From assembly GCA_025594325.1 (NCBI GenBank), contig JANHCV010000009.1, positions 992,001-1,056,000 of the forward strand: a stretch of 64,000 bases of DNA. The letters run 5' to 3'. A program made the translations under genes and the position numbers. The notes beneath the pieces were generated by a model. It was not told the DNA's origin and searched no databases. It worked only from the letters and a program-made list of their open reading frames with translations. Origin of the DNA: Blastocladiella emersonii ATCC 22665 (Eukaryota > Fungi > Blastocladiomycota). Shown here piece after piece: positions 9,833 to 55,441 of the stretch; the first letter of the stretch is position 1, and the number at the start of each line of letters is the position of its first letter.

Positions 9833-10339
9833 TCATTTCGACTCGCCGCGCGCAGTTTGGGTGACTCGGTGGGCCTGCGGCGCTCCTGCCCGAGGCTCGG
9901 AGACGGAGAAAAGTATCTCGCGCGCGTCACGTGATAAATCGACGCGTCTCACAGGTTTCGAAACGCGTCGCGACGCGGCCTTCGCGTCAGCTGAGACGTC
10001 TGAAATGTCCAGAAAGCGACGTAGGTTATCGAAACCACTGTCCATTACCTCAAATAGGGTCTTGCGCGGCCCGCGTGGCCACGTCCGTTCACAAGCGAAA
10101 CTTGCGCAGTCGGCCATGACTTGGCTAAGCGAGGAAGAGGTGTACGCAGGGGTTGAATTACTGCGGTTCGAGTCTTTCGCCAGCTTGTCAACGAGCTTGC
10201 GCAGTCGCTCCAGGTCATTCGTTTTGATGACAGACAGGAAGTTGGGGTCCACGGCTGCCACCTGCTGAGATGCATTCGAGCGAAGGGGGCGCAGCGGCCG
10301 CGCAGGGCCGTGCGCCTGACCTGCTTGAGCAGGTAGCAT
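9833..10339 (-). CDS. Orphan family member 1 (HxxxxPxR...K signature)
   Basis: ORF from MLPAQAGQAH. Its 44-aa block HGPARPLRPLRSNASQQVAAVDPNFLSVIKTNDLERLRKLVDKL aligns ungapped to three other ORFs in the window. The 3' end may be degenerate because it overlaps the motif at 9927. Confidence 0.55.
   Translation of the reverse strand: MLPAQAGQAHGPARPLRPLRSNASQQVAAVDPNFLSVIKTNDLERLRKLVDKLAKDSNRSNSTPAYTSSSLSQVMADCASFACERTWPRGPRKTLFEVMDSGFDNLRRFLDISDVSADAKAASRRVSKPVRRVDLSRDAREILFSVSEPRAGAPQAHRVTQTARGESK
9927..9950 (+). repeat. Island motif copy: TCACGTG-ATAAATCG-ACGCGTCTC
   Basis: Exact match to TCACRTG-N8-ACGCGTCTC. Confidence 0.85.
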
Positions 10340-10931
10340 TGTGGGCAGCTGTTGGTGAACGGATACCGAGTGGAGAGGAGGAGGAGGAATGATTGCTAGC
10401 GGGCGACTAACGCGTTGTGGTGTTTGCTCCCCCACAACGAGCCTACTTGTATGCACACATCACTCGTACGCACGCACGCACGCACTAGAGTCATGCGCCG
10501 TGTGCATATCAGGTTCGCAAATCCCTTGCTCGATGAATGATTGAGCCTGCATCACTCGCTGCATCACTAGTTCGCGCGGCTCCGACGTCCCGTCGCAACG
10601 TTTGGCTCCCTGAACACGGTGGTTCCCGCTCCAGGCGGTCGCATTTTGTTGTTCCAAGCTGGCAAGGCCGTGGGCCTCAAGTTTTGGAGCGCGAAAATCG
10701 CGCGCGTTGAGCCACACCCGCACACAGAGGTCACTAACCAGTGACCAAGGTGCGATCCTTCTTATAAGAAGGATCGCACATGAACTGCTAGCCATAATAC
10801 GATTGATGTCTTGCCTGATGTAGCCACAATCAACTGCTCTATCACCACGAGCGTGAAGTGGTTATCGAGGCCGTAGTCTCAAGCCTCCGACTTGTAGTTT
10901 AGGACGAACGTTGGGACGCGTCACGCGCGCG

Positions 10932-10955
10932 GCGTGTGGTAAATCGACGCGTCTC
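10932..10955 (+). repeat. Island motif, partial copy: GCGTGTG-GTAAATCG-ACGCGTCTC
   Basis: Shares 17 exact bases (TAAATCGACGCGTCTCA) with the 9927 copy. The heptamer is degenerate. Confidence 0.6.
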
Positions 10956-11222
10956 AACCGTCCCGGCCACCTGAGGTCTCACAATCGTAGCAGCAAGGAC
11001 CTGAAGGCGTCATCTTTGCTCACTCATTTCGAGAACGTGCTCAAGTTCCATCGATCAATCTGTCTATTGCCCAGAAATTATATTCTACCCGCTCGTGGTG
11101 CCGAATCACGACTTAGATCAGGAGCCCGAGCGCTGCAACCACGCCCATGATCGACGAGGTCAGGTAGACGGCGTTCGTCCCCGCAGAACTACTTGGCGAA
11201 CCGGTAGGGTCTCGCTTGGGCA

Positions 11223-12667
11223 TCACGCCGTTGGCCACGGGCGTCGTGGCCAGCGACTCGACGGCTGCGGGAGCCGTGAAGCTCGCGGGATCCAGCTTGT
11301 CGACCCTAAAGGAGTTGCAAAACGTGAGTTCACTGCTCGATCGCTCGGCTCAACGCAATTAGAGCCGCGTCGAACGTACCAGCGGAAGTTGAGCGAACCG
11401 TCAATCTGCGTCTCGATCTTGAGCAGGTTGATGACCTTGCGCGGCCAGCTCGCAGGCATCATCTTGGTCCCGCCGAGGACCACGATCGTCTGTCCAAGCA
11501 CCAGCGCCGTCGGGCTCTCGACAGCGAGCGGACCCATGTCGGGGTTCAGCACGATGCCCGCGGTCGCGGTGAGCGTGCGATCGCGCACGTACGTGACGAG
11601 CGAGCGGGCGCCGCGTCCGCCGAAATAGATGTCGTAGCGCGTGTCGTTGACGCCAACGTACGTGACGGCGGCGGGATCGCGGCCGACCGAACGCAGGTCG
11701 CCACGAACCAGCAGGTTACCCCGGCGCGTGTTGGCGGACTGCGGCGAGTACGACCACACCTGCGTCGGGAACTCTTCTAGCCGCAGCTTGACCTCGGCCT
11801 TTTCGTCGCGGCCCGACCAGAACATAGTACCGCCCGCCGCGTCGATGGCGCGGATCATGGGCACGCTCGGGTTGAAGGTGTCCGTGTACTTGACCTCGCC
11901 GAACTGGAGGTGTGGGGGTCGCGAAAAGTTAGCTACTGGCCGCTTCGATGCGGCGTCAATGTAGAAATGTGTACCTCATTGATGGTCGCGACCGGGGTCG
12001 TCTTGTTCACGTTGATGTTCAAGTCGAGGTTGGTGGTCGTAAACCCGCCGGTGCGGTTACGCGCGAGCCCGCCCATCACGAACGCCGTCGGGCGCATCGC
12101 GCCGGGCACCGTGTCCGAGAGGACCACGACGCGCGCCGGGTACAGCGGCATCGACGCGTTCTTGGTGCCCGTCGTGAGCTTGGCCTGGACGCTGGCCGAA
12201 TCGGCCGCGGTCGCAGGGAACTCGTACTCGAAGACCTGCGTGTTGGGCACGTTGACGGCCGAGTTGCCGCCCGCGAGCAGCACGCGGTACGGGTCGCTCG
12301 GCGACGGCTGCGACATGAGCGGCACGAGGTTGGCGACGCCCACGGCGCCGAGCGACGGCTGCATGGTGACGATGGAGGGCTCGGGGCCCGACTTGGCGAG
12401 GTCGAGCGGCTTGGAGAAGTCGAGCGGCTTGGAGAAGTCGAGCGAGAAGACGGTCGACAGCGGGCGGCCCGTCACGTTCGCGGCCGCGCCCGCGGGAACG
12501 GTCTCGCCGCCGTACACGGTCGCCAGCTTGAGACGCGACATGTACGTCACGGCGACGCCACGGAACCCGTTGGTGGTCTCGGCAGGCCACGGGCCGGCGG
12601 TGGCGGGCGCCGCGACGAGAGCGATCCAGAGCACGGCGAGCAGGGACACGAGGGAGATGGATCGCAT
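11223..12667 (-). CDS. Secreted protein with Kelch-like beta-propeller character (2 exons)
   Basis: Signal peptide MRSISLVSLLAVLWIALVAAPATA and repeated hydrophobic-GG motifs (VYGG, LLAGG, FVMGG, IYFGG, VVLGG). Intron at about 11911-11971. An 18-bp tandem duplication encodes FSKPLD twice. Confidence 0.6.
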
Positions 12668-13547
12668 TGCTGTGGAAGTCGTCAAGGCGATGTTAAGTCA
12701 AATTAGGGGAGAGGCGGGCATAACAGATTTTATAGTCGTGGAAACAGGCTCGTTCTGACCATGTTCTAGGCGAGCGCAAGGGTAGTGCGGCCGACGGCCC
12801 CAGGTGTTCGAGCTCAGACACTCGATCAACCGAACAAGATTCCAGAAAATCTCGACTGGCTGCGTCACGGCACCAGGGTAGGGTCCCTCCTCATCGCCGG
12901 ACACGCGACGTTTTGCGATCCATGAAGCCGGTGGAGCCGGAGTCTGCAGCTTACACGCCCATCAGACTTTGATCAGATGGTGCTCTGGCCCGAGTGTCGA
13001 TGCGTGCTGCTGACCATCCATCGCGATGAAACTAAACCGCCGTTGGGTGATCGTAGCGCCGGCGCAAGGCGAAATGACCGCATGGGTCCACGCGGGCCAC
13101 CTCGACGCGTAGTGCCGAGCGGCTGGACGAGTATCTGAGTCCAAGGGTTGCGTGAGTCGACGGGCCGAGTGGCGCGTCGCGTGCCATCGAGGGTGTGGCG
13201 GCGCATCGCGCCCATCCCGATCACAGTTCAAAAGCGGTGGCTCCTCCAAGGCTTCGAGCAGGCGAAGCGAAGGGAGTACGCGATCGGCTCACTTTCCGGA
13301 TCTCAAGCTCCGGAACTTCACGACCTCCTCAAATCTCAAGTTGACGCTGAACCCTCCCTCAGAATGATACGGGCGCTGCGTTTGTCCGAGGGGTGATGAT
13401 CGCTGGCTTGATGGCAACGAACGCGATGGGGCTTCGAGTTTTGTCCCGTCAGCCGTGAGAGTAGGTAGCGTGTCAGGCCACGTCGATCATGCAGGGACCG
13501 CAAGCGGTTGCTCGCGGTGATCAGCGTCGAAACGCGTCCCACAGCTA

Positions 13548-13571
13548 TCACGTGATTGTTCGACGCGTCGT
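13548..13571 (+). repeat. Island motif copy: TCACGTG-ATTGTTCG-ACGCGTCGT
   Basis: Two mismatches at the 3' end. Preceded by TGATCAG and a second AAACGCGTCCC, as in the 16242 copy. Confidence 0.75.
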
Positions 13572-13599
13572 CGCGTCGCCTCTGGCGGAGGCCGCGCGG

Positions 13600-13818
13600 A
13601 GGCCGCGCGGAGCAAGGATGCCCAGCGTCCCGTAAGCCGGTGCCGAGGATGTATGTATCAGCTGCTGCAACCTGCTGTCTGACGCGATGCAAACATGGAG
13701 CGAGCCTAACGCCGAGGCTTTGACACGACTCGCCCTGCCCTACGGTTCGCAGGACCTGCCACTCGACTAGCTTCACTTCAACCTCGCACACGTTCCTCTC
13801 GAACGCGTAAGCGCACAT
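13600..13818 (-). pseudogene. Possible relic of the MATH-like/BTB family (pre-BTB segment)
   Basis: YAFERNVCEVEVKL aligns with WSYERYGCRVEIKI of the 51038 BTB protein. No BTB core follows. Confidence 0.25.
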
Positions 13819-14252
13819 AGAACCGACTCTTCGGCATCTGTACCCCCCAATTCTCGCTCATCCTCGCCGCCATGTCGCGTGGCTACTTGCTCGCGATCGT
13901 GGTCGTGGTCGAGAGAGCAAGGTGGATCGGCGGCCCATCATGTCGTTGAGAGCTTTCAAATTTGATCCATGTGGGCCAGCAACGTGGTCGCACCAGCGAG
14001 AGCTGCGGAGCTGCGGAGCTGTCCGCCGATTCATGCGACCCGCCGTTGCCCTTTGGGGCGACGAAGAACGGAAACTCCGTGCCCCCTTCCCTCCCCTTTC
14101 GGGGCGTCCAGCAGCTGTCTAGGTCGGCACGAGGTTGGGGCTCGAGCAGCTCAGCTCGGAGCGTGGTGCGCCTCCCCCTTGCTGCGCTGGATCGCGGTTG
14201 CGCCGCGGCGCTCCTCGGCGTCAACACAACCGTCTCTAGACCCGCGGCCGCG

Positions 14253-16087
14253 ATGCAGTACCCGCCGACGCCGCTCCTGTCGCCCGAGTTCACGCCGAAG
14301 AAAGAGCGGCCGTCGAAGATCAAGGCGACGCACTCGCGGCCGGCGAAGAAGCGGATCTCGAAGCTGGTCCTCCCGCCCGGCTCGCTCGACGAGCACCTGG
14401 AGGATGTGGCCGCCGCAATCCAGCCGACGCCGCGCCAGGAGCGGCTCGCGCACGAGTGCACCGATCTCGTCGCCGACTACGTGCTGCGCTCGCTCCAGGC
14501 CGCGCTGCCGAAGCTCGAAGCGACCCGTGCCGCCCGTGTCGGCTCGCTGCACAAGAAGACGGCCATCCACTTCTCGTTCGACGTCGACCGCGTGTTCATG
14601 ATGAGCAACTTCAACCCGACGACGCGCCATCTCGAGGACACGCTCGTCGTCATCGAGCGCGCGCTCGCGCTCGCGGCCGACCCGCCGCGCTACTGGCCCG
14701 TTGACGACGGGCTCGTCATGTGGGTCGCCGACGTCAAGAGGCGCGCCAACAGTATCGCGTGCACCGTGTACGCCGGCCCGCTCAACCTCGAGTTCGACGA
14801 GAGCGACGGCGGCGTGCGGCACGCGGGCGCCGCCGTGCCCGCCTTCAAGGTCAAGCTCGACCTGCTGTGCGCGACCGAGGTCGTCGCGGACCCGGACCAC
14901 CGCATGACGCGGCGCGGGACCGCCGCGCAGGTCGAGTCGCTCCGCCACGTTCTGTCGACCAACGAGACCGTGTCCAAGTCGCTGCACCGCCTGTACCAGC
15001 CGCTCGTGTCCGAGGCCACGGTCGAGACGGTGCTGCGCGAGCCCGACGTCGTGCGCAAGCTGATCCGCATCCTCAAGCTGTGGGGAATGCTCGTCTTCTC
15101 GAGCAGCGCGACCGCCATGTCCAAGTCGACCATCTTCGAGAACCTCGCCGTCTACGCGGTCCGCGAGTACGCGTACGACCGCCGCGAGCTCACGCTCGAG
15201 GCGCTCGCCATCAAGGTGATCCGCTATATCGCCAACCTGGACAAGCTGCAGCTCGGCGGGACCCGCAAGGACAGGCCTGCGGCGGCTTATGTATTGCACA
15301 TGGTATGTTTTCACTCACCTGAACGTCTCCCACTGGCTGGCCTCTAACGACCCGCGACCTCGTCGTCGTCGTCTAGTGTGACGAGTCTAACAACCTGACG
15401 CGCACCGACGACTCGCGCGTGTTCTCGGTCGAGTACCAGGGCGACCTCAAGCACGCGGCCGAGTCGCTCCTCCCCGACACCCCCGCGGCGTTCTGGCTCA
15501 TGGCGTACCCGCAGGACAAGCGGCTGATCACGACCACGCTCATGTTCCTGCGCATCCGCGTGCTCGACGCGACGTGCGCGACCACGCCGATGCCCGGGTT
15601 CTGGCACCTCGACAAGCGGTTTGAGGAGATCGGCATGCACCACCAGATTGCCGCCCTCGTCACGGTCGCCCTCACGCTGCAGGACTGGATCCGCGGCGCG
15701 CTGTGCGCCGCCGTCGGCGATACGGCCAAGGCCGTGATCCAAGGTATGGAGCAGTACCTCGACTCGGAGTACACGCTCGACTGCACGCCGGGATCGCCGT
15801 ACTCGACGGACGACGGGCGCACCGCGCTCCGCTCGGTCGCCGAGACTACCGTGCAGCTGCTCCAGCGGCTCGTCGGGTTCACCAAGCGCGCCGAGGCGTA
15901 CGACGACACGACCCAGTTCGACGGGTTTGCGGTCGTGATCCCCGTCGTACCCGACGTCGTCTCGCTACACGTCGAGGTCCGGTGCCCCGTCGTCGACACG
16001 CACAAAAACCTCAAGGAGGTCGCTGAGGATGCGATCGAGGAGGAGAACAGGCGCGAGAGGATTGAGGCGCGCAGGAACGGCGTTTAG
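14253..16087 (+). CDS. 2'-5'-oligoadenylate synthetase (OAS)-like nucleotidyltransferase with an extra C-terminal domain (exons 14253-15302 and 15377-16087, 586 aa)
   Basis: GSLHKKTAIHFSFDVDRVFMMS has the same spacing as OAS [22 protein letters not shown]. Also a third Asp in KLDLL, VRKLIRILKLW (cf. LKSLIRLVKHW), IFENLAVYAVRE (cf. YALELLTIYAWE), YVLHMCDESNNL (cf. VILDPADPTGNL) and N-terminal PGSLDEHLED (cf. AKSLDKFIED). The phase-0 GT..AG intron keeps the frame. Confidence 0.82.
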
Positions 16088-16241
16088 AGAAGATGATACC
16101 GCGGCGTGTGGTGAAAATGTAAATAAGATCCAATATACCTCGCTGATTGTGCATACATGAACTCGGTCACTGTTCCTCTACGTTGTCGGCCAGGGGTGGG
16201 CCAGCCTGATCAGGCTGATCAGAAAACGCGTCTCGCACCCG

Positions 16242-16265
16242 TCACGTGTTATCGAAACGCGTCTC
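16242..16265 (+). repeat. Island motif copy: TCACGTG-TTATCGAA-ACGCGTCTC
   Basis: Exact consensus match. It lies between two convergent 3' ends and is preceded by the 16-bp palindrome CAGCCTGATCAGGCTG (16202-16217). Confidence 0.85.
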
Positions 16266-16336
16266 ACACGCTTGAACCGCGCGTGCGAGCGCCCCTGCTC
16301 AAATTCTTTGGCTCTACGTGTTAAATCAGGGAGTTT

Positions 16337-17353
16337 TCAATTATACAGCTCTACCAACGCGTTACTCGGCGCATTGAAGCTAGCCAACATCTTCTGCGCA
16401 ACAGCCACAAGCTCGCGACAGTCGATCCGCTGCGCAAACTCGACCAGTTCGGTCGCCTGGCTCGCGTCCTTGATGACCGGATCCACGCCGACCGACTCGA
16501 AAAACTGGTGAATTGCATGGGGAACCGGCTCGCCGGGCACCCAGCCCGAGTACACGTAGGCAAGGACCATTGCAAAGGGCGCCATTGGCCACGACAGCTT
16601 GATCGGCTGTCCTTCGCTGATCCGCTTCGCCCAAGCTCCTCGGATCAGCGCGGCGAAACCGGGCTGGGTGCTGAGAATGAGCTTCGCCGCGTACACGACC
16701 GTGATCATGGGCGGCGAGTGGCTCACGCGAACGTGGAAGCACAGGTCGCAGCGTGCCGGGTTGTTGAGCTTGCTGGTAATGACCGTTGATGCCCACCACG
16801 GGAGCCGCTGCTCGACTACCGGGTGCAGGAACTTGATTACAACGCGGCGAAGTCCCGTTTCGAACAAGCTCGCGACCGTGGTCTCGACGAACACGGCGCT
16901 GTGTAGCGTCAAGCACGCCCGCTCGCCGGAATTTGGGATCTGACAGCTCGCAGTAGGCGTCGGAGCGCTGAACAGCGCGTCGCGACAAGCGGGGAACGGA
17001 AGGCTGATAGAACACTCGATCGCACTCGTCACGCGGGCCACGGCGATGCTGACCTCGGCCGTCTCGTTGAAGGCGCCAGGTCGGACGAGTACGGAGAAGC
17101 TCTTGAACGGCAAGTGGGCCGGCGCGCTACACACGTCCGAGGCGAAGCCGCGGCTCAGATCCGAGCTGCGCGCGAGCGACTCGGCGTGCTTGCGTTGAGC
17201 GAACAATGTGAACCTTGGAGCGCCTGCCGACGCGACATCGGACGACTGCCCTGGTTCCGCGGGTGGGATGGTAGAGAAGGTGAACGTCGTCGCGATCGCA
17301 TCAACAGCTACGAGCGGCGGGCCAAGGCGAACCTGCGCCGTGAACGCTCGCAT
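16337..17353 (-). CDS. BTB/POZ-domain protein with an uncharacterised N-terminal beta-rich region
   Basis: LNNPARCDLCF...VYAAKLILSTQPGFAALIRGAWA...PIKL...FAMVLAYVYSGWVP is homologous to the 39114 and 51038 proteins. The start is uncertain. Confidence 0.7.
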   Translation of the reverse strand: MRAFTAQVRLGPPLVAVDAIATTFTFSTIPPAEPGQSSDVASAGAPRFTLFAQRKHAESLARSSDLSRGFASDVCSAPAHLPFKSFSVLVRPGAFNETAEVSIAVARVTSAIECSISLPFPACRDALFSAPTPTASCQIPNSGERACLTLHSAVFVETTVASLFETGLRRVVIKFLHPVVEQRLPWWASTVITSKLNNPARCDLCFHVRVSHSPPMITVVYAAKLILSTQPGFAALIRGAWAKRISEGQPIKLSWPMAPFAMVLAYVYSGWVPGEPVPHAIHQFFESVGVDPVIKDASQATELVEFAQRIDCRELVAVAQKMLASFNAPSNALVELYN

Positions 17354-17626
17354 GGAGGTCTCGCATCGTCTTCTCGGCCAGAAACACGTACGGGGAGGCG
17401 CAGATTGTCGCGCAAATTGTTGCGCAGAGTCACGGCTTCGGGCATGGCGAGGTTTGACGTATCGCAGTCCGAGAGCCTGGAGAGCTAGCGAGGGACTTGT
17501 CCCCGCAGAAGGCGGTTCGATCCACCTCGCGCAGTGTCTCCCGTCACGGACGAACCGACGAGCGCGGACGAACAGACGAGCGCACAGGTCATGTGTCAGC
17601 AATTCGTCGAGCGAGTGCCGCTGCTT

Positions 17627-17650
17627 GAGACGCGTCGGTCTATCATGTGA
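17627..17650 (-). repeat. Island motif copy (inverted): TCACATG-ATAGACCG-ACGCGTCTC
   Basis: Exact consensus match on the minus strand. Inverted relative to the 16242 copy. Confidence 0.85.
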
Positions 17651-17710
17651 TCCTTGTCTCGCGCTGCGCCACACGGTCGTTACGGGATGTCCCAAAAACG
17701 GCGTGTAGTA

Positions 17711-18951
17711 TTACGCAATAACATCATCAAACAAAATCTTCATGAGCTCGCCGACAAGCTGCGCGTTGAGGCTGTTGCCGAGGAGGCGGTACTGCTGCGC
17801 GCGCGAGACGGACTTGGGGAAGGTGAGCGAGTCGGGGAAGCAGTGCAGGCGCGCGACCTCGGCGGGCGAGAAGAAACGCGGGCGCAGCTGGACCATGCGG
17901 TCCACGTCGCTGATCAGCTGCGAGCCGCCGGCGGGCAGCAGCTCCGAGACGAGGAACGAGCCGGATCCGAAGATGTGGCGCGACCCGTACGCCTTGGTGA
18001 AGGTCGACGAGCGCGTCGCGTTCGAGGAGACGACGTCTACACGGGAGGGGCGGGGTGTGAGAGTCGGGGGTTTGGGGAAAGGGGTGAGGAGAGATGAAGC
18101 GGACCGAAGTTGAACTTGTGCGACTTGCGGATCCACGCTTCGGGCACGAGGCACGTCTCGTCCACTTCCACGTCGAAGTACGACGAGAGCGCGGCGACCT
18201 CGACTGCCGGGTTGTCGGAGGAAGTAGGAGAAGAGGAGGGCGACCACACGACGGGCCAGGTGGTCTGGATCACGCCGCGCTCCGAGTAGAGCGGTGTGGG
18301 CTCCGACTCGGCCTCGTCCGCAGCCACCGGGGCCGCCGGCAGGTCGTCGGCCCGGCGACGAGCCATGAGAAAGTATCGTAGTCGGGCGTTCGGGATGCCG
18401 AGGTGGGTTGGCTCGAGGAGACACTCCGCGATCGCGTACCCGCGCCTGTCGAGGGCGTCGACGAGGATGCGGCGGCACTCGCTCGTCTCAAAGTTCTTGA
18501 CATTCTCGAGGAACAGGTACCGCGGCGGGACCGCCATGCGCTCGAGCAGCGCGACGAGGTGCAGCAGGCCGCGGCTGCGGTCGTCCTCGTGGTCGAGGCA
18601 CTTGCCGCCGCGCGTGAACGGCTGGCACGGCGGCGACAGGAACCAGGCGTTGGCACGGTACCGTTCCACGTCGGCGAGCGACAGGTGCTCGATGGACGCG
18701 GTGCTCAGCGCCGTCGCGGGGAAGTTGTGCGCGTACACGGTGTTGGCGACCTGGTTGACGTCGTACGCGGCGACCACGTCGCCGGGCGCACCGGTGTGCT
18801 TGAAGCCATAGTGCTACGGGCGGAGTCGGGGTTGGGGTCAGGACTTGGCCGAGTCGAGCCGCGCAGGGAGCGAGCCCGGCCGTACCAGGCCGCCGATCCC
18901 GGAAAAGAACTCAATGGCGCGGATCTCCGTGTTGGTGTTGCTGCTAGTCAT
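17711..18951 (-). CDS. DNMT2: DNMT2/TRDMT1 tRNA (cytosine-38-C5)-methyltransferase
   Basis: Motif I EFFSGIGG, motif IV SPPCQPFTR, motif VI LENV, CFT/SSTFTKAY region and motif X QQYRLLGNSLN. Two introns. Confidence 0.95.
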
Positions 18952-19479
18952 GGTTCATGTGCAACGTTGCATGGGTTCGCTGGTTGGGCGACGAGGGAGG
19001 AGAGAGGAGGGATCAGCAGCGACTCGGCCACTTGCGAGACAGAAGGCGAGACGGCTGCCACGGCGGTCGGCTCTCAGGTGACGCGCGGCCACGCCACTCG
19101 CGCCGCCGCGCCGATCCTCTCGCAGAGCGCCACCCGCCCGTGCAGCAAGGTTGGCGCGTCCCTCTCTCTCCCGCGAGCGATCCCTCGTACCCGTACCCGC
19201 AACGCGACGTGCTGGGCGCGTCTCTCTGAACCCGTCGCTCGCTCGCGCAGTCGCCCTTCCCATCGGCACTGCCCTCCAACCGACCGACCGACCCGCCGCG
19301 GCACCGTCGCCCCTTCAACCGATACACCCGTACCCCTTCGCGTACGTGATGCCCGCGACCGTGCCGACCCATCGGCCAAGTCAGACTGACGAATTCGACC
19401 CCGCACCGCCGTCCAGATCGCGCATCCTCTGCACCCGCTGCTCCATCGCGCAACCCCCGCAACCCGTCGCGCCACCACC

Positions 19480-36834: not shown

Positions 36835-37392
36835 TCATATATACGGTGCGGGAGCGGCAGGGGCCGCGAGAGGGAACTTGCGCGGACGTTTTCTCCGAAA
36901 CATGGCCTTGATGCGCGCGCGACTTCGGTTGATCATCAACCAATGCGGCGGTTGGAACAACCAGCGACCAGCCTGTGGAAGTTGAGCCGAGGAAATGGTG
37001 TCGTGGGCCGGACCAACTCCTGTGAGCGATTCGGAGGACGCGCTACACAGCGAGGCTGCATATGTCGTTGACAAATTGGCAGTGCTGAACAGTTGCTCGA
37101 CATTAGGTTTGGAGGTGAGACTCGATGGCGGGCGTACGAGCGGAAGCAACAGCTCCAGATGACCGACGAGGTCGGTCATGCTTGGGTCAAGAGCGAAGAA
37201 CGGCGTGCCGGTCAGGCTGACGGCCGCGCTGCGCGTGAACTGAAGCAAGGACAAACAGGCATCATTTGGGACCACCAACAGCTTGTCTTGATTTACCGCT
37301 GGATTCTTGCTGGCCGATACTTTGACAGGCCTGAGAGCGGAACCGCCATCACGGCCATTTGTGGGACGAGGCGTCCCAGGTTCGTTACTCAT
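36835..37392 (-). CDS. Orphan family member 5 (tandem paralog of 37798-38286)
   Basis: AVSLTGTPFFALDPSMTDLVGHLELLLPLVRPP aligns ungapped with TLTLTGEPYPIKCPTVEQFVASFHVLLPLLEAP (11 of 33 identical). Confidence 0.5.
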   Translation of the reverse strand: MSNEPGTPRPTNGRDGGSALRPVKVSASKNPAVNQDKLLVVPNDACLSLLQFTRSAAVSLTGTPFFALDPSMTDLVGHLELLLPLVRPPSSLTSKPNVEQLFSTANLSTTYAASLCSASSESLTGVGPAHDTISSAQLPQAGRWLFQPPHWLMINRSRARIKAMFRRKRPRKFPLAAPAAPAPYI

Positions 37393-37797: not shown

Positions 37798-38286
37798 TCA
37801 TCCCCTATACACCTTGGACCTCGCCAGGATTCGGGCAGCAATTTGTTCCTTGTGCGCGTAATCCACAGACAGTTCCCGTTGAACTGCAGTGACAGGTACC
37901 TCGGGAACGTATATCCATGTTCCCCACAGTCCCCAGCGAGAGAACGTGGTCACCTCCGTCACAGGGTTTCGATCTTGTGGCACGGGTGCCTCGAGGAGCG
38001 GCAGCAAAACGTGAAAGCTCGCGACGAACTGTTCCACAGTCGGACATTTAATCGGGTAGGGTTCGCCAGTGAGAGTCAGAGTGAAGTGTTTAACCAGCTT
38101 GTACAGCCTCTGATAATCAGAGTCCTTGGCCAGCACGTTGATTCCTTCAGCCAGCGCAGGGCTGAGATGCGTCGAGGTCCCTTGGACGTTCCGAACCGGC
38201 TTTGCGGCCTTGTGAGCGCGTCTTTGCTTCTGGGTGATGGTTTTGTGCGCAAGGGGAAGCGGTGCCTGCGAGGACGCCGATGACAT
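37798..38286 (-). CDS. Orphan family member 2
   Basis: Signature block HKAAKPVRNVQGTSTHLSPALAEGINVLAKDSDYQRLYKLVKHF. An alternative upstream ATG lies at 38415. Confidence 0.55.
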   Translation of the reverse strand: MSSASSQAPLPLAHKTITQKQRRAHKAAKPVRNVQGTSTHLSPALAEGINVLAKDSDYQRLYKLVKHFTLTLTGEPYPIKCPTVEQFVASFHVLLPLLEAPVPQDRNPVTEVTTFSRWGLWGTWIYVPEVPVTAVQRELSVDYAHKEQIAARILARSKVYRG

Positions 38287-38756
38287 TCTGTGTGACGAGT
38301 CGGGCGCTGGAAGTCTCGAAACCGCCGTGTCTCGGGGCCAGAAGGTAAAGTACCTGTTGAGAATATGGAATGGAAAGCCCGACGGGTGCGATGTCTTCGG
38401 GCGAGGAGCGGCCATGAGCGAACAGTAATATGAATAACGCGAGCAGGGAGAACCAATGAATCTTTACGCCGGGTCGTGGTTTGGCCAGCTGAGCCAACGG
38501 CTCTACTTAATGTTCTGCTGCCACAAGTGCATATATCAGTCTCGCAGTAATGCGGTTGGTTTTGAGCAATGCGCGAGACGTCACTGCACTTCAACAGCGG
38601 CGTGATTCTGGACTAGCTCACGCCTGCGACACCCATATCGCACGCGAAGTAAATGAGCACGAATGACCAACATGTACGTCGGTCGTAATGCTAATTTTTG
38701 CGCAGCTTCCGGTGGCCTACATGCACTCACGTTGCTAAACCTAGTGTCGGCTTATG

Positions 38757-39113: not shown

Positions 39114-40121
39114 CTACGCTTCCTCGACAGACGCAATCGGCGGCTCAGGTTCTGCTTCCGACTCGAGTGTTTGGGCCTCAAACGACCGGATCGCGCTGTC
39201 GATACGCTCGTCCAGTGCGCGCACAATGCAAGGGCGCAGGGCCTTCATAAGGTCGGCACACTCAAGCATCTGAGCCAAGTTGAGGCACTTGGTCAGGACG
39301 TCAAAGTGTTTGAGCTCCTCGATGTCGGTTCCAAACTTGGTGAAGATGCCAGCAATCTCGACAGGAGGTTCCATTACAGTCGGGACCCAGCCAGTGTACA
39401 AGTGCGCGAGCGCTAGAAGAAACTCCGGGAGGCCCCACTCGGTCATTGAAATCGGTTCCTTGGCGGCGGCGGATTCAGCCCAGTTGCCGCAAAACATGGT
39501 GGTAAAGAAGGCAGACCGTGCGCCCAGGATCGAGCGCGAAGCGTGAATAGGCTTGGTGGTGTCGCCGGCGATGAATGACACGTCGCACAAGTTTTGATTT
39601 CCAAGCGTCGAAAGCAAAGTGAAGTCCATGTTGAGTTTCTGGGACATGGCGGTAGTTGAAGGAGTGTCACTCACGGTAACACGCAGCTGTACGCCGTACG
39701 CATACGAAGGCATGACCATGTCCATGAATGTCCCGTAGACCGAATCAAGTTGGCACGGGTGAACAAGGACGGTACATTGACCCTCGTCACGGTACGTTGC
39801 GCAAACTGTAATTTTGACCTCGAAAGTGCGGGTAATTTCATCCAACGGAAAGAGTGTCAGAGTAACCGCCACGGTATTCTCGCGAAACCCGCGGTAGAAG
39901 GTGAGAAAGAATGTTCCGCTTCCAATTGTTGGTGGAAGTGATGCAGAAGTCGACCTAAAGCCATTTGTAATCTTTGTGTTGCTGCCCGAAACGTTTTTGA
40001 ACGTGTAGACGTGACCGCTTTCAGCGGTATCAAACCAAACAAATTCGAAGGCAGTCTAAAAGAACCGTTGTGAGCGGCATCCAGTGCGAGTGCTGACTGA
40101 AGTACATGCAGGCAGATCCAT
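39114..40121 (-). CDS. MATH-like + BTB/POZ protein
   Basis: BTB core LGNQNLCDVSFIAGD...IHASRSILGARSAFFTTMFCGNWAES...EPI...HLYTGWVP. The frame stays open upstream to a TTTTAG acceptor, with a short first exon MDLPA at 40121. Confidence 0.8.
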
Positions 40122-40419: not shown

Positions 40420-40435
40420 GCGCGCCTGGGCGTGC

Positions 40436-40459
40436 GAGACGCGTTGGGAAATCATGTGA
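40436..40459 (-). repeat. Island motif copy (inverted): TCACATG-ATTTCCCA-ACGCGTCTC
   Basis: Exact consensus match on the minus strand, about 310 bp upstream of the BTB gene. Confidence 0.85.
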
Positions 40460-48328: not shown

Positions 48329-48361
<33 letters not shown>

Positions 48362-48528
48362 TGGCGGCGCTGCTCCATCATGATCATTTCGTGCGCCATG
48401 GTCGCCGAGCCGCCACCGCCGCTGGGCCGGCTCGAGGGTGCGGCGCCGTAGCCCGCCGGTGGCGGCGCAGCGGGCGTGGGCGGGTACTGCGGGTACTGAG
48501 ACCGCTGCGGGTTGTGGTTGTTGTTCAT
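46016..48528 (-). CDS. NUFIP1: NUFIP1/Rsa1 snoRNP assembly factor with C2H2 and CCCH zinc fingers and a Q/P/A-rich N-terminus (3 exons)
   Basis: CDACDKKF...HLSKH C2H2 finger, LDTPEDLAKWIAERKKRYPT NUFIP1 motif, CRFWKRGNCRNGDACKYRH, and LLARLL...LLQCLRFVVNNRFF. Confidence 0.82.
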
Positions 48529-49726
48529 GGCGACGTGGTGGTGTGAGGCTGCATGGGGTCAGTGGGGGGCAAATGAACGGGCAGCGCCGAAAAGGAGGAA
48601 GCGAGATTGCGCGCGCGTCACGTGGGACGGTTGCTGGGCGCCTGCAAACGCGTCCCGCGCGTCTCGCAGCGTGTCTCCCGAGAAGGCGCGAGCGACGGCC
48701 TTCCCATCCACGCTCCCAAACGCAGAACCATGAGAGCCACTCCATGAAACTCGATTGCGTCGTGGCTCGTCGCGTGGTCCTGCACGCGGCCACTCGGCTT
48801 GTTCTGCCGCTCGCCACGGCGGCAAACACGCGTCGTCGAGCGGCCCCGCCATCGAGCGGTTCTCGCTCAAGACGTCCATAACTCCGCTGTCGCGCTCTCG
48901 CATCTCGTTCGCCAACACGATCGCATGCCCCGGCTCGACGGTCGCGCCATCCGTGACTAGGCTTCGCGCTGTGCGCCTGCTGAGGTCCATGCCACCGCCC
49001 TTGTACCCGCGATTCTCGTCCAGGACTTCCGCGTATACGACTGCGCACGCTACTCGGCGCCGCTCACGGTGCTGCGAAACCCCGTCCGACAGCACCTCGC
49101 GCACCGCCGCTCGTTCACAATCTCACTCGCGACTTGCACGCGCTGAGCGTATCCCGACTGGCCCGCGTTGCTCCGCACTATTTTGCTGGTGCATGTAGCA
49201 CTTCTCCGTTCTGCTTGTTGACTTGGACGCTGACCCGATTCGACGCGTTGAGCTCGTGCACATGGGCACGGGCGTCCTGACTTACCTGGTTGGCAACCGC
49301 CCTCTTCGCCATTGTGCAGTGCTCTCTCGAACCGTTACGCTCGTTTCCATCGTGCGCCCACTCCCGCTCATCAATGATCAGGAACGTCGGCTGGCTTGCT
49401 CACTGGCGCGAACGGCTCGTCGACTCGGAGATCATAATCTTCCGCCCGCAGCAGGCACACACCGTCTTCACCTCGAACGCTCTCGCCCTCCGCCCACTCA
49501 CTACATCCTCATCGCGTCTTGATGTACAACGGCCCCGCGTCTCGCGAGTGAGTCTCCGTGGCTCAGCGCAGCGCTTCGGCCAAGGTGTTGCGCGGCAGCA
49601 GCCTCTCGTTGCAGTAAAACGTGCGCGAGAATCACGTCGGTCGGCGCTCGCACCGTGCGTTCATCGCCTGAGTCCCGTCGCTGCCCGCCATGGTCATAGT
49701 TCGCGAAAATACTGAAGTTTTGTTCA

Positions 49727-50356
49727 TCAAAACACGGGCTTTGCCCTCCACTGCGGGTTGCAGATCACGCATACCACGTAGGGAACGTACAGCATGCCCG
49801 ACTCCTCGTCGATTCGCATCTGGGAAAGGCCCTGAAGCTGGGTCGCAAAGTCATCCACACAGGCCTTGTGGAGGTATAGGCGCGCCTCGCGCACGGCCGC
49901 GCTGAGCGGGTCGACGAGCTGCGTGGGCGTACGCGCCAGCACCTCGCCCAGCACGCGGTGCTGGTGGTACTTGTACGCCGCGCGGATCAGTATCGGCTCC
50001 TCGCCCGCGCTGCACACGTGCGGCCCGCCACCCCACTTCATCAGGCAGCCGCACTTCATGCGGAGCACGCGGAGCCAGTCCGGCCGGTCGTCGGCGTAGA
50101 CGTGGAACGGCTGCATCCTTGGGAACCGCGGCTTGATGAACTCTTGCAGCCGTTTGAGACCAGGCGCGACGTGTAGGTACGCGCGCAGGTCGCGGCCGAG
50201 ACGCCGCGGCGGGCCCGTCGGGCACTGACGCGCGTAGTTGAAGACCGAGCCCTCGGCGTCGGGTGAGAGGCGGCCAACGCATTTGCAGGGCGAGCAGCCG
50301 CGAAGTGTGGCCGCAGTGGCAAAGAGGAGGATGTCTTCCACGAGGTCGAGATTCAT
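49727..50356 (-). CDS. Lineage-specific protein with an F-box-like N-terminus
   Basis: 209-aa ORF starting MNLDLVEDILLFA. A second copy of this N-terminus (MQLDLMEDIL) lies about 180 bp upstream. Confidence 0.4.
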   Translation of the reverse strand: MNLDLVEDILLFATAATLRGCSPCKCVGRLSPDAEGSVFNYARQCPTGPPRRLGRDLRAYLHVAPGLKRLQEFIKPRFPRMQPFHVYADDRPDWLRVLRMKCGCLMKWGGGPHVCSAGEEPILIRAAYKYHQHRVLGEVLARTPTQLVDPLSAAVREARLYLHKACVDDFATQLQGLSQMRIDEESGMLYVPYVVCVICNPQWRAKPVF

Positions 50357-50669
50357 GGCGAGATTACTGCCAGCGCAGAGAGGAGTACGAGATGGGTGAG
50401 TGCATGGACCGGCAAAGTGGGTCGGGGGTCGTTGCGGCTCTCTTCGTGCCTCGGATCGACGTGCAGGGAGGCGGGTGATCGTTGATCATGATCAACGGCG
50501 GGCAAAGAATATCTTCCATGAGGTCAAGCTGCATCGAGTCGCAGGCGTTGTTTGCGACGGCCAACGCGAGGGCGAAGTAGGTGTGCACGGCGTTTGCACA
50601 GTCGTTGGGCTCCGCCTTCCTAAAGTGATGCACGGAGTGATGCATCGCGTGATCAGCATGGGGCTGACA

Positions 50670-50693
50670 TCACATGATATCGCGTCGCGTCTC
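50670..50693 (+). repeat. Island motif copy: TCACATG-ATATCGCG-TCGCGTCTC
   Basis: One mismatch to the consensus, preceded by TGATCAG. Inverted partner of the 52225 copy. Confidence 0.75.
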
Positions 50694-51037
50694 CTTCGTG
50701 TCTCACGCGGTGACAAGTTCAGGTGTCGCATTCGTTATGCGTAAACGCGGGCTCGAACAAGTGCACAATCAGGCTCACACTCTTCAGGGCCGAAGGATAA
50801 TTACTTGCCTCCGGACTGGAAAGACTAACCTGCGCTTCCCGCATCAAATCAAACTTCCCACTGTTTGCATGAGTATTTTCGAGTTGATCTTTTATAAAAG
50901 GAAAGGGGAAAGTACAAGGATGGAAATTCTCTTGGGAGATGACAACAAATTTCAACATAACGCGGGCCGGAGGAACAAATGTGGTGCCACGAGTCAAGGA
51001 ATTGTTTGGCAGTTTACTTGGCTGCCGAGGCAGACGA

Positions 51038-52040
51038 CTAAGCAGCGGGCTTGATCGAGATCGCGTTGATGCGGGTGCTGATCGCGTCCACGATCTTAGG
51101 CTTCAGCGCCGTCATGAGCTTCGGGCACTCGAGCATTTCTGCAAGGTCGAGGCAATTGACAAGAACGTCATAGTGATAAAGTTCAGCGAGCTTGACCTCG
51201 AGCTTGGCGAATGCTGCTGTAATCGGCTTGGGTGCAGCGTCAGGACCAGGGACCCAGCCCGTGTACAGGTTGACGATCGCAAGCGCGAAAGCGGCACGTT
51301 GCCAAGCGGGCAGCGCGATGGGCTCCTTGGCAGCTGCCGAATCCGCCCAGTCGCCTCCAAACATCGAGGCAAAGAAAGGCGAGCGTGAAGAGAGAATAGC
51401 AAGCGAAGCAGCGATCGGTGTGGAGGTGGATGCTCCTGGAAGGAGGCTTACATCACAAATTGCAGGATTTCCAAGCGATGATAGAAGCGTGTCATCCGCA
51501 GCTGAAATAGGGGCGGTGAGCAGGTCGGTTTGACTAAACTTAATCTTGATCTCGACACGACAACCGTAGCGCTCGTACGACCACCAGGAGATCGGTGCAA
51601 CATAGAAAACAACTCCCTGCTCTTTACGAATTAAGCAGGACATGGCTGTAAGCTTTTCAGGATTCGACATGTGCATAATTTGGGCACTGCAAATCAAGTC
51701 GACTGGCAATTGGGTGCCGTTGAATGGCTGGAGCATCACGCTCATCTCCCACACGCTTGATGCAAACGATGGCCGGAAGCCGATTATAAAGCTTCCCCCG
51801 CCAAACTTGGGGTGGAAATCGGTTTGTTTGGTTTTAAAGCCGTGTTCGGTTGCATCACTTGAAACGCAGAGGTCCTCGTACGTGTAGCTGACTGATTTGG
51901 CATCCTCCTCGATCTTAGCTTGCTGGGCAAGCACCTGATTTACGTGAGCGTCAGCGAGGTTTTGGTTACATGAGCTTCTGCCAACTTGCATACTATAATT
52001 TTTGTCATTGCTGAGACGCCTCTTTTGCGTCGGTTTCATG
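51038..52040 (-). CDS. MATH-like + BTB/POZ protein
   Basis: LGNPAICDVSLLPG...IAASLAILSSRSPFFASMFGGDWADSAAAKEPI...NLYTGWVP, closely parallel to the 39114 protein. The N-terminal region also aligns (HGFKT...FGGGSFIIGF vs NGFRS...IGSGTFFLTF). Confidence 0.82.
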
Positions 52041-52224
52041 AAGGCGGAGGGAAAGTGGAACACGCGCTGTTTTGCCCCTTTATCTATCCGAGAGCAGACA
52101 TGGAAGCAAACTGGACAGTACCTCGACCTCAGGCTGACAAGCTCGTTTGTACGCTCAACCGCGGAACGTGATAGATTTTTCAGAATTCGCGTGTTCATGT
52201 GTCTCGCGCTGACCACGTGGGCGT

Positions 52225-52248
52225 GAGACGCGTTTCGATATCACGTGA
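52225..52248 (-). repeat. Island motif copy (inverted): TCACGTG-ATATCGAA-ACGCGTCTC
   Basis: Exact consensus match, 23 of 24 identical to the 16242 copy. Confidence 0.88.
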
Positions 52249-52360
52249 ACTGCGTCTCTTGGCATCGAAGAGCTCAAACGTTTGCCAAGCGACAAATAAT
52301 AAGGTTCAAGCACTTAAGGAGGTTAATACAGTGATTGCAACACAGCGGAACAAAGCATGG

Positions 52361-52639
52361 CTACCTCAGCCGCGGACACGCTGGATGCGGCTCTCCTGAC
52401 ACCAAGCGCGTCACCAGCTTGGACTTGAGCGCGTCCAGCCAGAGCAAGAGGTGAATGAGAACGACGACAAGGGCATGGCGGGTCCACTCGTGAAGCTTGA
52501 TGGGCGCGTTTGACTTGATGGAGTCGGTCCAGCCGCCGCGAAACATGGCAGCAAAGAAGGGCGAACGGGATAAGAGAATTGCGCGCGAAGCGTGGAAGGG
52601 CGAAGTCGAGTCGCCCGCGAGGAACGAGACGTCGCACAC
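52361..52639 (-). pseudogene. Truncated BTB/POZ gene fragment
   Basis: CDVSFLAGDSTSPFHASRAILLSRSPFFAAMFRGGWTDS is present, but the TGWVP segment and the N-terminal region are missing. Confidence 0.75.
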
Positions 52640-52962
52640 GGCCGGATCTTTGAGCGCGTCAAGTCAAGTCGTGCCGATGCGCGAAGGAGCGGGGATGGTG
52701 ACGGTCATGGGGGGGGGGGCGAGACGACGTGGACCGAGGCAACGATCCAATCAACCCGAAATGGGTCGCTCTCCACGTTTTGGAAGCGCGGATCAACCGC
52801 CTGCAACCACACAATGGCTCACATCATAGCAGCCCCTGCAAAAGAACCAAGGTGGGTTTTTTTGTGCGTGGAGAGCGCTTTGCACAGGCTCAGCAGTGAC
52901 CCCGCATCTCCTGTCGGAGTGAGCGACCGCTTCCTGACTGGCTCAATGATGTCTCGCACGTG

Positions 52963-52986
52963 TCACGTGATTGTTTGACGCGTCTC
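52963..52986 (+). repeat. Island motif copy: TCACGTG-ATTGTTTG-ACGCGTCTC
   Basis: Exact consensus match. The upstream GTCTCGCACxxG is shared with the 16242 copy. Confidence 0.85.
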
Positions 52987-53311
52987 CGTCGTCTGGGCCG
53001 TCCTTCGCACGAAGCTCGCACGTTAAGGTAGATACGTGATGAGAGAAACGAAAAAGATATTTAGAGCGGCAGCGAAAACCCCTTTTCCAAAAATGCGTTC
53101 TGCGCGCATGCATGCATTGAGCGGCCATGGATTCAGCCTTGTGGCAACCACCGACTTGGCCGCGGCCCTCGCCTCTCCCGAATCCATCTCGCGCCCCATA
53201 CTGCGTGTCCCATTCATTACCACCGCAGTAATTCCACACGACCTTTGGGACCAGCGTCCGTCCGCAAACTATTCGTAGTGGAAACAGTAAACTGTTCAAC
53301 GTTCTGCATCC

Positions 53312-54043
53312 ATGGCAACCACCAGGACTCCGACTCCTCTACAAGTTCATAACAGTGCACAGCCAGTCCGAAAAGTTCGGGACACGCATAATCAGCAGAA
53401 GACCAGCTTCCATCCCGGATGCGAGGTTCTGGTGAAACGCTCCAACCTCGTTCGCATCACTTCGCTCGCTCACAAGCTTTTCAAGTGCGTCGATATCGAC
53501 ATCCGGATTCCTGCGTCGCGAACCGCCTACTCGAACGCGGAATTCGTCAAGGTCACCAACTCGCTTGAGAAAATGCTCACGGCTTTGTTGGCCCTGCGCT
53601 TCTGGGCTCCCATTGGTCCACTCACGGCCTCGGGTCCATCAGCGTCTGGCAAGCTGGTCACGGAGGACGACGAGACGGACGATGACGAAACCGAAGCCCA
53701 GGAGGAAGATGAGCCCGAAGCTAATGAGGAGATGGGGATCAGCCCAATTGAGCGCTACCTTTCGAAGTTGGACGCAATCCAAAGACGGATAACCGAGTAC
53801 GAGGTCAAGCGCATCCGTGCCATCACAGCTTCGCCCTGGGTAATGCGCACTTTTGGCATTGTCTTGCCAGCCACTCCTGTCCAACACACTCGCACCCAGA
53901 AACCTTTCCAGACCAAGACCCCCATACCCATTTTTTCGAGACAAATCTCGACGATACCGGTGCAATACATATATTATATACGATACCACACGACACGCTG
54001 CAATCCTGTGGCTAGCTACAAACTCGAGCTCAGCGACAGTTGA
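53312..54043 (+). CDS. Orphan family member 3, with an acidic tract
   Basis: Signature HNSAQPVRKVRDTHNQQKTSFHPGCEVLVKRSNLVRITSLAHKL. The unspliced ORF's stop codon falls inside the MITE TIR. Confidence 0.6.
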   Translation: MATTRTPTPLQVHNSAQPVRKVRDTHNQQKTSFHPGCEVLVKRSNLVRITSLAHKLFKCVDIDIRIPASRTAYSNAEFVKVTNSLEKMLTALLALRFWAPIGPLTASGPSASGKLVTEDDETDDDETEAQEEDEPEANEEMGISPIERYLSKLDAIQRRITEYEVKRIRAITASPWVMRTFGIVLPATPVQHTRTQKPFQTKTPIPIFSRQISTIPVQYIYYIRYHTTRCNPVASYKLELSDS

Positions 54044-54352
54044 AGTGGAGAGAGAGTGGATTAAAACGGGTGTGCCATGACACGGGTGTTATGCTCCAAC
54101 TCTCCCCCCCACTCGAGCTCCGAAACTTCTACGGAGAAGAATCACCACGGAACACGAGCGGCAACAAACGACTCCCAAACCTCTATGGAGAGGAATGACG
54201 ATGGAGGGCGCGCGGGAACGACGAATGGAAATGATAGTGCGCACAAGAGGAATCGATCTCAGGGCTCATAACCAGTTGAAGTGGAGAGAGAGTGGATTAA
54301 AACCCGTGTCATGGCACACCCGTTTTAATCCACCCTCTCTCCACTTCAACTG
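54037..54352. mobile_element. MITE-like element: 316 bp, 50-bp terminal inverted repeats, 3-bp CGA target-site duplication
   Basis: The left TIR CAGTTGAAGTGGAGAGAGAGTGGATTAAAACGGGTGTGCCATGACACGGG (54037-54086) matches the reverse complement of 54303-54352 at 49 of 50 positions. CGA flanks both ends (54034-54036 and 54353-54355). Confidence 0.88.
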
Positions 54353-54459
54353 CGACACTGCCGTCACTTGGTTTGCGCACACTAACGATGCGTAATTCGA
54401 GCATCCGTGAATACGGCATAACCCTGTGATTGCTGACGATCATGCGAGGGCACTAAACT

Positions 54460-54507
54460 GATCACGCGTCAGATCACGCGTCAGATCACGCGTCAGATCA
54501 CGCGTCA
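54460..54507. repeat. (GATCACGCGTCA)4 12-bp tandem array
   Basis: Four exact units, each containing ACGCGTC, about 50 bp before the motif at 54561. Confidence 0.92.
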
Positions 54508-54560
54508 GATCAGCGCGAGACTGCTTAAGGCTGCACTGCGAACATCAAAGGGCGAATAGC

Positions 54561-54584
54561 TCGCGTGTTTTCGCGACGCGTCTC
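54561..54584 (+). repeat. Island motif copy: TCGCGTG-TTTTCGCG-ACGCGTCTC
   Basis: One mismatch in the heptamer, with the 8-nt spacing preserved. Confidence 0.7.
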
Positions 54585-55042
54585 GCGTCAACCGGCGGCG
54601 TTGGTGTAGGGCAGTGTTTCAGCAAGCTCGATGAAACGCTGGAGACTCGCGCGACACGACGCGCGTGGCCCAGTTCCCCGGTTCAAGGCTTTACGGCTCC
54701 TCCATTCTCGTCCAACTCCCGACCGAAACAGCTACGGTTAGCGCCGAGGTACTGAAAGTGAGGCGATTCTTCGCGTGATTTCGTGGTACGACGCACTTGC
54801 CACGCATGTATCATCAGGCGGCAAAAGCCAATAGGTGGCCATCGACGCATGGAACGAGCGCGACGTGCGCTGCATTCAAGTTGAGCTCGAAAGCCGCAGC
54901 TTGTAAAGTGCTCCTGTCTCGCTCCCTCCAAATTCCACCCTTGAAATGAGTAGGCCTCGTAATGTCTCGACTAATTTTTTACCCGTAACTGCACTGGGTC
55001 CTAATACCCTTCGCCTGTGGCCTTGTAGCAGACCCGACTCTG

Positions 55043-55441
55043 GTGTCGTCGGCTTCACGCTCGCACTGGAGCGTCCCCGAAAGACCAAGTGCAGCTTCGT
55101 CAGGACCTCGAGGAACCCACGGCCTCGTGCGTCCTCCACGCTTCGTCAACTATGTCGCATCACAACGCATGGTTCGTGCCGAGCCGAAGAACCTCGCGCT
55201 AGTCAAGCAGGCCGACTTGAATCTCTTGGCCAAAGTCGCCCTACGACTTTCGAACTGCACCGAGGCCCGCCCCTACGATGCCGCAGATATACGCGTTGAT
55301 ACGCTTGCGGAGGTATCCGAGCTGATTGACATGATCTTGGAGATGCTTCCAGCGCTGCTGGCGATTCCCATACTTCGGCCCCGGATCTGTTGGATCCTGG
55401 CACCCTCCGCTGTTTGGGCCCTCGAATCGACCCAAGAGTAG
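55043..55441 (+). CDS. Orphan family member 4 (start unclear; may be a pseudogene)
   Basis: Signature HGLVRPPRFVNYVASQRMVRAEPKNLALVKQADLNLLAKVALRL. MLPALLA matches MLTALLA of member 3. No in-frame ATG was found upstream of the signature. Confidence 0.45.
   Translation: MSSASRSHWSVPERPSAASSGPRGTHGLVRPPRFVNYVASQRMVRAEPKNLALVKQADLNLLAKVALRLSNCTEARPYDAADIRVDTLAEVSELIDMILEMLPALLAIPILRPRICWILAPSAVWALESTQE

Follow-up and report, generated by a model that had tools for sequence, protein, structure and literature searches.

Introduction

Eukaryotic genomes commonly contain families of genes that are confined to a single lineage and have no known function, and among fungi they include orphan, tandemly amplified families of small proteins such as the wtf genes of Schizosaccharomyces pombe and the effector clusters of smut fungi. 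The subject here is a family of this kind, encountered as five open reading frames (ORFs) in a 64,000-nucleotide stretch of the Blastocladiella emersonii ATCC 22665 genome (contig 21, JANHCV010000009.1, positions 992,001 to 1,056,000), referred to below as the window; the genome comprises 32.65 Mb in 21 contigs. An initial annotation of the window had proposed that the five ORFs form an unrecognised, fast-evolving orphan family of partners or effectors dispersed together with neighbouring genes for BTB adaptors. The reading favoured by the present analysis, at a probability of about 0.5, is that the ORFs belong to a selected, lineage-restricted multigene family of small basic proteins predicted to fold as helical hairpins, with neighbouring paralogues as candidate partners.

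Like the wtf genes and the smut clusters, this family consists of many diverged paralogues in one lineage, arranged as tandem arrays and dispersed singletons, with fast divergence beyond a short core and a composition atypical of core genes. It differs from them in having no evident signal peptide or transmembrane segment and no link to long terminal repeats or a sexual cycle, and the likeness is one of description only. With the bacterial WXG100 proteins, exemplified by EsxA-EsxB, it shares a predicted helix-turn-helix hairpin of ~100 amino acids (aa) and adjacent paralogous genes, the layout expected for heterodimeric four-helix bundles. However, the family has no conserved W-x-G column in the turn, lies among housekeeping genes with no secretion-system context, is eukaryotic with long disordered extensions, and gives no sequence match or significant structural match to WXG100 proteins. 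The BTB/POZ proteins (PF00651) of the window resemble the family in location, in low G+C content at third codon positions (GC3) and in being multi-copy, but the sequences are unrelated and the two are not co-located elsewhere in the genome.

Five window ORFs belong to one large family

The five ORFs are true members of one homologous protein family. A hidden Markov model (HMM) built from 22 copies outside the window retrieves exactly these five from the 785 ORFs of 40 aa or more in the window, with E-values of 1.8e-16 for copy A (9833-10339, minus strand), 3.3e-16 for copy B (37798-38415, minus), 2.6e-18 for copy C (53312-54043, plus), 3.7e-17 for copy D (54989-55441, plus) and 2.2e-10 for copy E (36835-37392, minus). 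As five shuffled versions of the window ORF set return no match with the same model, the observation made in the initial annotation, which had placed the five ORFs correctly, is confirmed. Pairwise blastp scores of 26-34 bits are mutually consistent (A-C, A-D, A-B, B-C, C-D, B-E), and the kinship of E with B that had been read from a more downstream alignment is upheld by a score of 29.6 bits as well as by the recovery of E with the external HMM. The ungapped 44-aa alignment of copies A to D is likewise reproduced, with blocks beginning at residues 49 (A), 68 (B), 13 (C) and 26 (D), within a conserved block that is longer, at ~95 aa. Four residues of this alignment, H1, P6, R8 and K30, had been described as invariant, which is true of the four window blocks; across the family they are frequent rather than invariant, being found in 23 (H), 30 (P), 30 (R) and 26 (K) of 36 members, compared with 27 of 36 for D33 and 32 of 36 for L37.

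The family extends far beyond the five copies first counted. A profile of the window copies finds 37 sites in the genome, all of them open frames and many in tandem, and a profile of 27 copies finds 46 sites with open frames of 127-594 aa and internal stops in none. These counts set a lower bound on family size of at least 43-46 copies, or ~45 genes, each of them small at about 130-600 codons. When 1.84 billion representative proteins are searched exhaustively with a profile, only five match, four of them being the hypothetical proteins H9P43_005271, H9P43_005272, H9P43_006291 and H9P43_009541 of B. emersonii ATCC 22665, which correspond to family copies on contigs 17, 19 and 7 of the present genome. 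A barnacle repeat protein (E = 2e-7) is the fifth; it matches over five repeated helical stretches and is regarded as spurious. At most 4 of the ~45 copies are therefore held in the GenBank protein set, leaving ~90% unannotated. The published B. emersonii assembly, of 21 contigs with funannotate annotation, makes no mention of the family in its accompanying paper (PMC9730499).

Searches of other collections give the same picture. Pfam models applied to the five window ORFs and 22 full-length members produce only scattered single matches below cut-off, the PHROGs search and two runs against the ESM Atlas are blank, a metagenome scan with a single family protein detects no relatives, and PDB sequence searches with a profile and with a single member provide no family assignment. 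A word-based protein search also returns no match, but as it missed the four GenBank copies too, probably because low-complexity words swamped it, this result carries no information. The orphan status proposed at the outset is thus borne out by Pfam, PHROGs and the 1.84-billion-protein search; the conserved block maps to no known transposon protein or common domain, and the description of the family as fast-evolving holds, in that it is fast-diverging and previously unrecognised. As far as public data show, the family appears to be restricted to Blastocladiella emersonii. It is a real, undescribed, lineage-restricted multigene family, of a kind common in eukaryotes.

Coding status and base composition

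Codon-level comparison indicates that the copies have evolved as coding genes under purifying selection. The closest non-identical pairs, including pairs made up of low-GC3 copies only, give NG86 ratios of non-synonymous to synonymous divergence (dN/dS) of 0.17-0.45 at saturated dS, values that fit coding genes and supply the dN/dS comparison proposed with the initial annotation. Nucleotide identity at codon positions 1, 2 and 3 in example close pairs is 0.67/0.77/0.49 and 0.69/0.80/0.52, so that position 3 diverges most, and the two measures together point to purifying selection on the reading frame. In addition, G+C content at the first codon position exceeds that at the second in all 29 copies examined.

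The window is GC-rich at 65-73% G+C, with dips to 52-58% near 36-40 kb, 50-55 kb and 61-64 kb. Family GC3 is 0.52-0.72 (about 0.6), against 0.52-0.61 in the flanks, 0.84-0.96 in neighbouring housekeeping ORFs and 0.98 in a dynein-sized window ORF of 4392 codons. The four annotated copies have the highest GC3 of the family (0.72-0.87), and the island BTB genes and other island ORFs are also low (0.60-0.77). More broadly, the hairpin family, the BTB paralogues and a second undescribed family, here termed family X, share a gene compartment in which GC3 is 0.55-0.77, seen in the window as islands at 36-40, 49-55.6 and 61-64 kb, compared with 0.84-0.98 for the ordinary genes of the genome. With only 4 of ~45 copies among the GenBank proteins, low-GC3 genes are seemingly missed by gene prediction, which suggests that the omission is systematic in the B. 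emersonii genome. Repeat-induced point mutation or methylation decay is rejected as the source of the low GC, since CpG is not depleted in the islands (observed/expected 1.12-1.23).

Predicted protein architecture

AlphaFold2 monomer models of copy C, a protein of 243 aa, were built with an alignment of paralogues. The model begins with an unstructured N-terminus, followed by an extended conserved segment carrying the motif H-x2-A-R-P-L-R-x-V-R, an antiparallel hairpin formed by helices at residues 43-59 and 75-94, an acidic disordered linker and a very confident helix at residues 145-173 (pLDDT, the predicted local distance difference test score, ~94). Confidence for the full-length model is lower (pLDDT 62.9), with the domain alone reaching pLDDT 77.6 and a predicted template modelling score of 0.51. 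The long charged C-terminal helix recurs in many other members after a linker that is variable and often acidic. Foldseek comparison of the full-length model with the PDB gives no match at E <= 0.001, and a wide fold search of that model with VIA-align finds just generic or designed helical hairpins at Z <= 6.8.

The conserved domain is net basic, with 13% K/R and 7% D/E. The regions N-terminal to it are not (6.6% basic, 5.2% acidic), for which reason a mitochondrial presequence is rejected. The N-termini inspected are rich in Pro, Ser, Thr and Ala and show no signal-peptide-like hydrophobic start, as judged by eye with no dedicated predictor, and the proteins are apparently non-secreted.

The domain lies at 53336-53611 in copy C, ahead of the acidic linker and C-terminal helix. 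In copy A, which starts at an ATG at 10337-10339 and has a GC3 of 0.60, it occupies ~10082-10324 and has an insertion of ~25 aa separating its two helices. Copy B has a second possible ATG at 38284-38286 and carries the domain at ~37966-38226, and copy E carries it at ~37093-37356 with a degenerate N-terminal basic motif (ALRPVK). Copy D (domain 55106-55381) has a short C-terminus and no in-frame ATG upstream of the motif, the start assigned in the initial annotation being a GTG at 55043. This copy is possibly a pseudogene, or else depends on an exon further upstream.

Subfamilies, cassettes and genomic arrangement

Three subfamilies are resolved by BLAST clustering and a maximum-likelihood tree. 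Subfamily 1 is dispersed and contains copies A, C and D; subfamily 2 unites B with copies on contig 19, with a Shimodaira-Hasegawa-like approximate likelihood ratio test (SH-aLRT) support of 94, and subfamily 3 unites E with copies on the same contig (SH-aLRT 98). Copy C clusters with copies at 555 kb on contig 6 and 1061 kb on contig 21 (SH-aLRT 97), and copy D with copies on contigs 18, 7 and 1. The layout of the window as two tandem pairs (B with E, C with D) and the singleton A is as first described, and as the copies of the window are not most closely related to one another, the tandem pairs are old. There is no DNA-level similarity among the window copies, and protein identity among copies is ~25-57%.

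A recurrent arrangement is a two-gene cassette in which a subfamily-2 gene is followed by a subfamily-3 gene on the same strand, represented in the window by B and then E. On contig 19 the cassette is found again at four or five loci, including L033 (twice), L035 and L047, and the branching of the subfamily-2 and subfamily-3 subtrees is largely mirrored; the recurrence and the mirrored subtrees together indicate that the pair has duplicated as one unit. Elsewhere the family occurs as singletons and tandem arrays, in dips of ~55-60% G+C flanked by ordinary GC-rich genes, the singletons occupying low-GC dips of 1-2 kb with housekeeping genes on either side.

Two features of locus L033 (contig 19, 751001-761000) concern the boundary between cassette genes. 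At 6499-7278/7282-7725 of the locus, the subfamily-2 and subfamily-3 ORFs lie in one frame with a single stop between them, and at 4001-4618/4533-5219 the two ORFs are in different frames with an overlap of 85 nt. These near-fused ORFs might be explained by read-through, by an intron or by a recent break. Family copies are also carried by large inverted duplications. A 100% inverted repeat at locus L038 (contig 1, 3427001-3437000) has arms of at least 4.75 kb, at 1-4752 and 4978-9729, a 225-nt spacer and one family copy per arm, and a larger mirror duplication on contig 7 (144.9-148.0 kb versus 174.2-177.3 kb) has three copies per arm. These are either true young palindromes or long-read assembly artefacts.

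Relation to BTB genes and nearby elements

The window encodes BTB domains at 39114-39872 and 51038-52216, with a fragment at 52364-52663. A further ORF at 16337-17695 (minus strand) is a diverged paralogue of these genes by BLAST and HMM that has no Pfam BTB match, and Pfam counts of BTB sites in the genome are therefore lower bounds. With 39 sites so counted, 4 of the 37 mapped family copies lie within 5 kb of one, all four being the tandem-pair copies of the window, and 23 of the 37 come from contigs that have no BTB match. Across 170 kb surrounding 17 further family loci, a profile of the BTB paralogues from the window detects no match, and the 120 largest ORFs neighbouring those loci include ThiF, G-alpha, UCH, ECM29, DnaJ, WD40, MSP and UBX domains, among others, and one RVT_2, with no BTB domain among them. 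Neither does any family member match the Pfam BTB domain.

The proposed nearness to BTB genes accordingly holds for the tandem pairs of the window and is absent at the 17 other loci, and the co-dispersal or partnership built upon it is not supported. The label of effector has no basis, given that B. emersonii is a saprotroph and that inspection reveals no signal-peptide-like start. The co-location in the window is best explained if both families inhabit low-GC3 islands of the same type, in a part of contig 21 where both are plentiful. On the preferred reading, the BTB genes of the window are co-residents of such islands rather than specific partners of the hairpin family.

The initial annotation had also pointed to an island motif near four of the five copies. 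As reconstructed here, this is a 23-bp element, CAC[GA]TG-N8/9-ACGCGTCTC, in which CAC[GA]TG is E-box-like and ACGCGTCTC includes an MluI-box-like ACGCGT. Seven instances occur in the window, at 9928-9950 (plus), 16243-16265 (plus), 17627-17649 (minus), 40436-40458 (minus), 50671-50693 (plus), 52225-52247 (minus) and 52964-52986 (plus), often immediately 5' of island genes when in sense orientation and downstream of them when in antisense orientation. The association with family copies is loosely true in the window, but the motif is a genome-wide element (611 copies, versus 0 for a reversed control) that most family loci lack in their vicinity and that is no mark of the family. Its probable role is that of a promoter or boundary element, not specific to the family. 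An 8-mer enrichment analysis of 38 upstream regions of family copies reveals no convincing family-specific motif.

Other elements adjoin individual copies. An element resembling a miniature inverted-repeat transposable element (MITE) at 54037-54352, whose terminal inverted repeats are ~50 bp long and which has a third copy of the repeat internally, starts 6 nt before the end of the copy C ORF, such that the present stop codon of C is inside it. A perfect 30-bp palindrome is located at 10750-10779, ~300 bp upstream of the open frame of copy A. Family X consists of tandem low-GC3 ORFs of 371-719 aa next to the two closest relatives of copy C, all on the minus strand: four at locus L039 (contig 6, 551001-561000; ORFs 3-2159, 5287-6639, 6840-7952 and 8044-9363) and one at locus L046 (contig 21, 1056001-1066000; ORF 7143-8639). 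Its members have no Pfam domain and are unrelated to the window BTB family.

Alternative explanations

Four other accounts of the ORFs can be set against that of a selected family, and they are taken here in descending order of probability. The foremost, which we consider improbable, is that most copies, including the five of the window, are decaying relics and that only the GC3-rich annotated few are functional. It draws on a GC3 that in most copies equals that of the flanking non-coding DNA, with only the four annotated copies reaching 0.72-0.87, on the absence of a start codon from several copies, on the truncation of D and the MITE adjoining the end of C, and on the inclusion of only four copies among the GenBank proteins. 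Against this, not one of the 46 sites has an internal stop over its 127-594 aa, when base-composition arithmetic predicts a stop about every 29 codons in a random frame, and the low dN/dS and third-position divergence persist even in pairs of low-GC3 copies alone. It is decidedly unlikely that the ORFs are instead carried by a mobile element or an integrated virus as cargo or accessory genes, with the low-GC islands as its insertions. The atypical island composition, the MITE-like repeat, the single RVT_2 neighbour and the perfect inverted duplications that carry copies would all suit such an origin, but the window copies have no shared DNA similarity and their proteins are merely ~25-57% identical, the 120 neighbouring ORFs contain no transposase, integrase, capsid or polymerase hallmark, PHROGs is blank, CpG is undepleted, and singletons are set cleanly amid housekeeping genes.

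Slightly less credible again is the original idea of fast-evolving substrates, partners or effectors of BTB adaptors that were dispersed jointly with them. Both tandem pairs of the window do lie 0.8-2.6 kb from BTB genes (those at 39114-39872 and 51038-52216), low GC3 is common to both families and contig 21 is rich in both. The genome-wide counts (4 of 37 copies near a Pfam BTB site, 23 of 37 on BTB-free contigs), the blank results at the 17 other loci and among their 120 neighbours, and the lack of an evident signal peptide stand on the other side, and co-dispersal is by now largely refuted. Last, and very doubtful, is the view of the domain as a histone-fold-like module that has diverged extremely and has a chromatin role, similar to the alphaN/alpha1 segment of H3 or to TAF4. 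The motif region of some copies may resemble the H3 alphaN/alpha1 segment, which is a lead rather than a test; the domain is net basic, and the TAF4 histone-fold chain 1h3o_A, which like the family has two helices, a long linker and another helix, is the sixth PDB sequence match, at a marginal E of 0.049 over profile positions 20-79. That match is not significant, however, and neither the profile nor a single member retrieves an H3 or CENP-A chain at E <= 10. The Pfam Histone model finds 15 genome sites and no family copy, fold searches return no histone fold, and the helix lengths do not fit one, helix 2 being ~20 aa rather than ~28. An H3 or TAF4 identity is thus not supported by PDB sequence, Pfam Histone or fold searches.

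Several observations also weigh directly against the account of a selected, lineage-restricted hairpin family that we prefer. The dN/dS values come from protein-guided local alignments at saturated dS, which bias them downward, and the family does not differ from the flanking DNA in GC3. An ATG ahead of the motif is lacking in about five copies, D included, which may be either dead or spliced. Fold searches give generic hairpins only and the monomer model is of medium confidence, and it is from this model that dimerisation and docking are derived. The absence of the family in relatives rests on annotated proteomes, while ~90% of copies are unannotated even in B. emersonii itself; since most copies escape annotation in their own genome, absence from related proteomes is no proof of absence from those genomes, and unannotated copies could exist in Allomyces, Catenaria and other Blastocladiella species.

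Proposed mechanism and significance

If the modelled fold is correct, a lone hairpin would require a partner, and the proteins would then most likely be dimeric, forming homo- or heterodimers as four-helix bundles. The preferred partners may be neighbouring paralogues, B with E and possibly C with D. Docking onto a conserved ligand in the cell, be it a protein or a nucleic acid, would be the task of the conserved basic peptide at the N-terminus, and the low GC3 suggests that expression is weak or restricted to particular stages. This combination of dimerisation, docking and weak expression is offered as a tentative scheme, possible rather than probable. A more specific version, in which cassettes of the B and E type encode obligate heterodimers and constitute a Blastocladiella-specific two-component system in a hidden low-GC3 compartment, for example a poison-antidote or self/non-self pair, is considered unlikely.

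As lineage-only families are common, the finding is of moderate interest. It removes a tempting and unsupported tie to BTB ubiquitin-ligase adaptors and brings to light, in a model zoosporic fungus, ~45 genes of a protein family not described before, ~90% of them missing from the public protein set. In a genome where typical GC3 is ~0.9-0.98, genes whose codon usage resembles that of intergenic DNA seem to be systematically missed, and the congruent duplication of the two-gene cassette leads to a concrete hypothesis, that its products may act as paired helical-hairpin partners.

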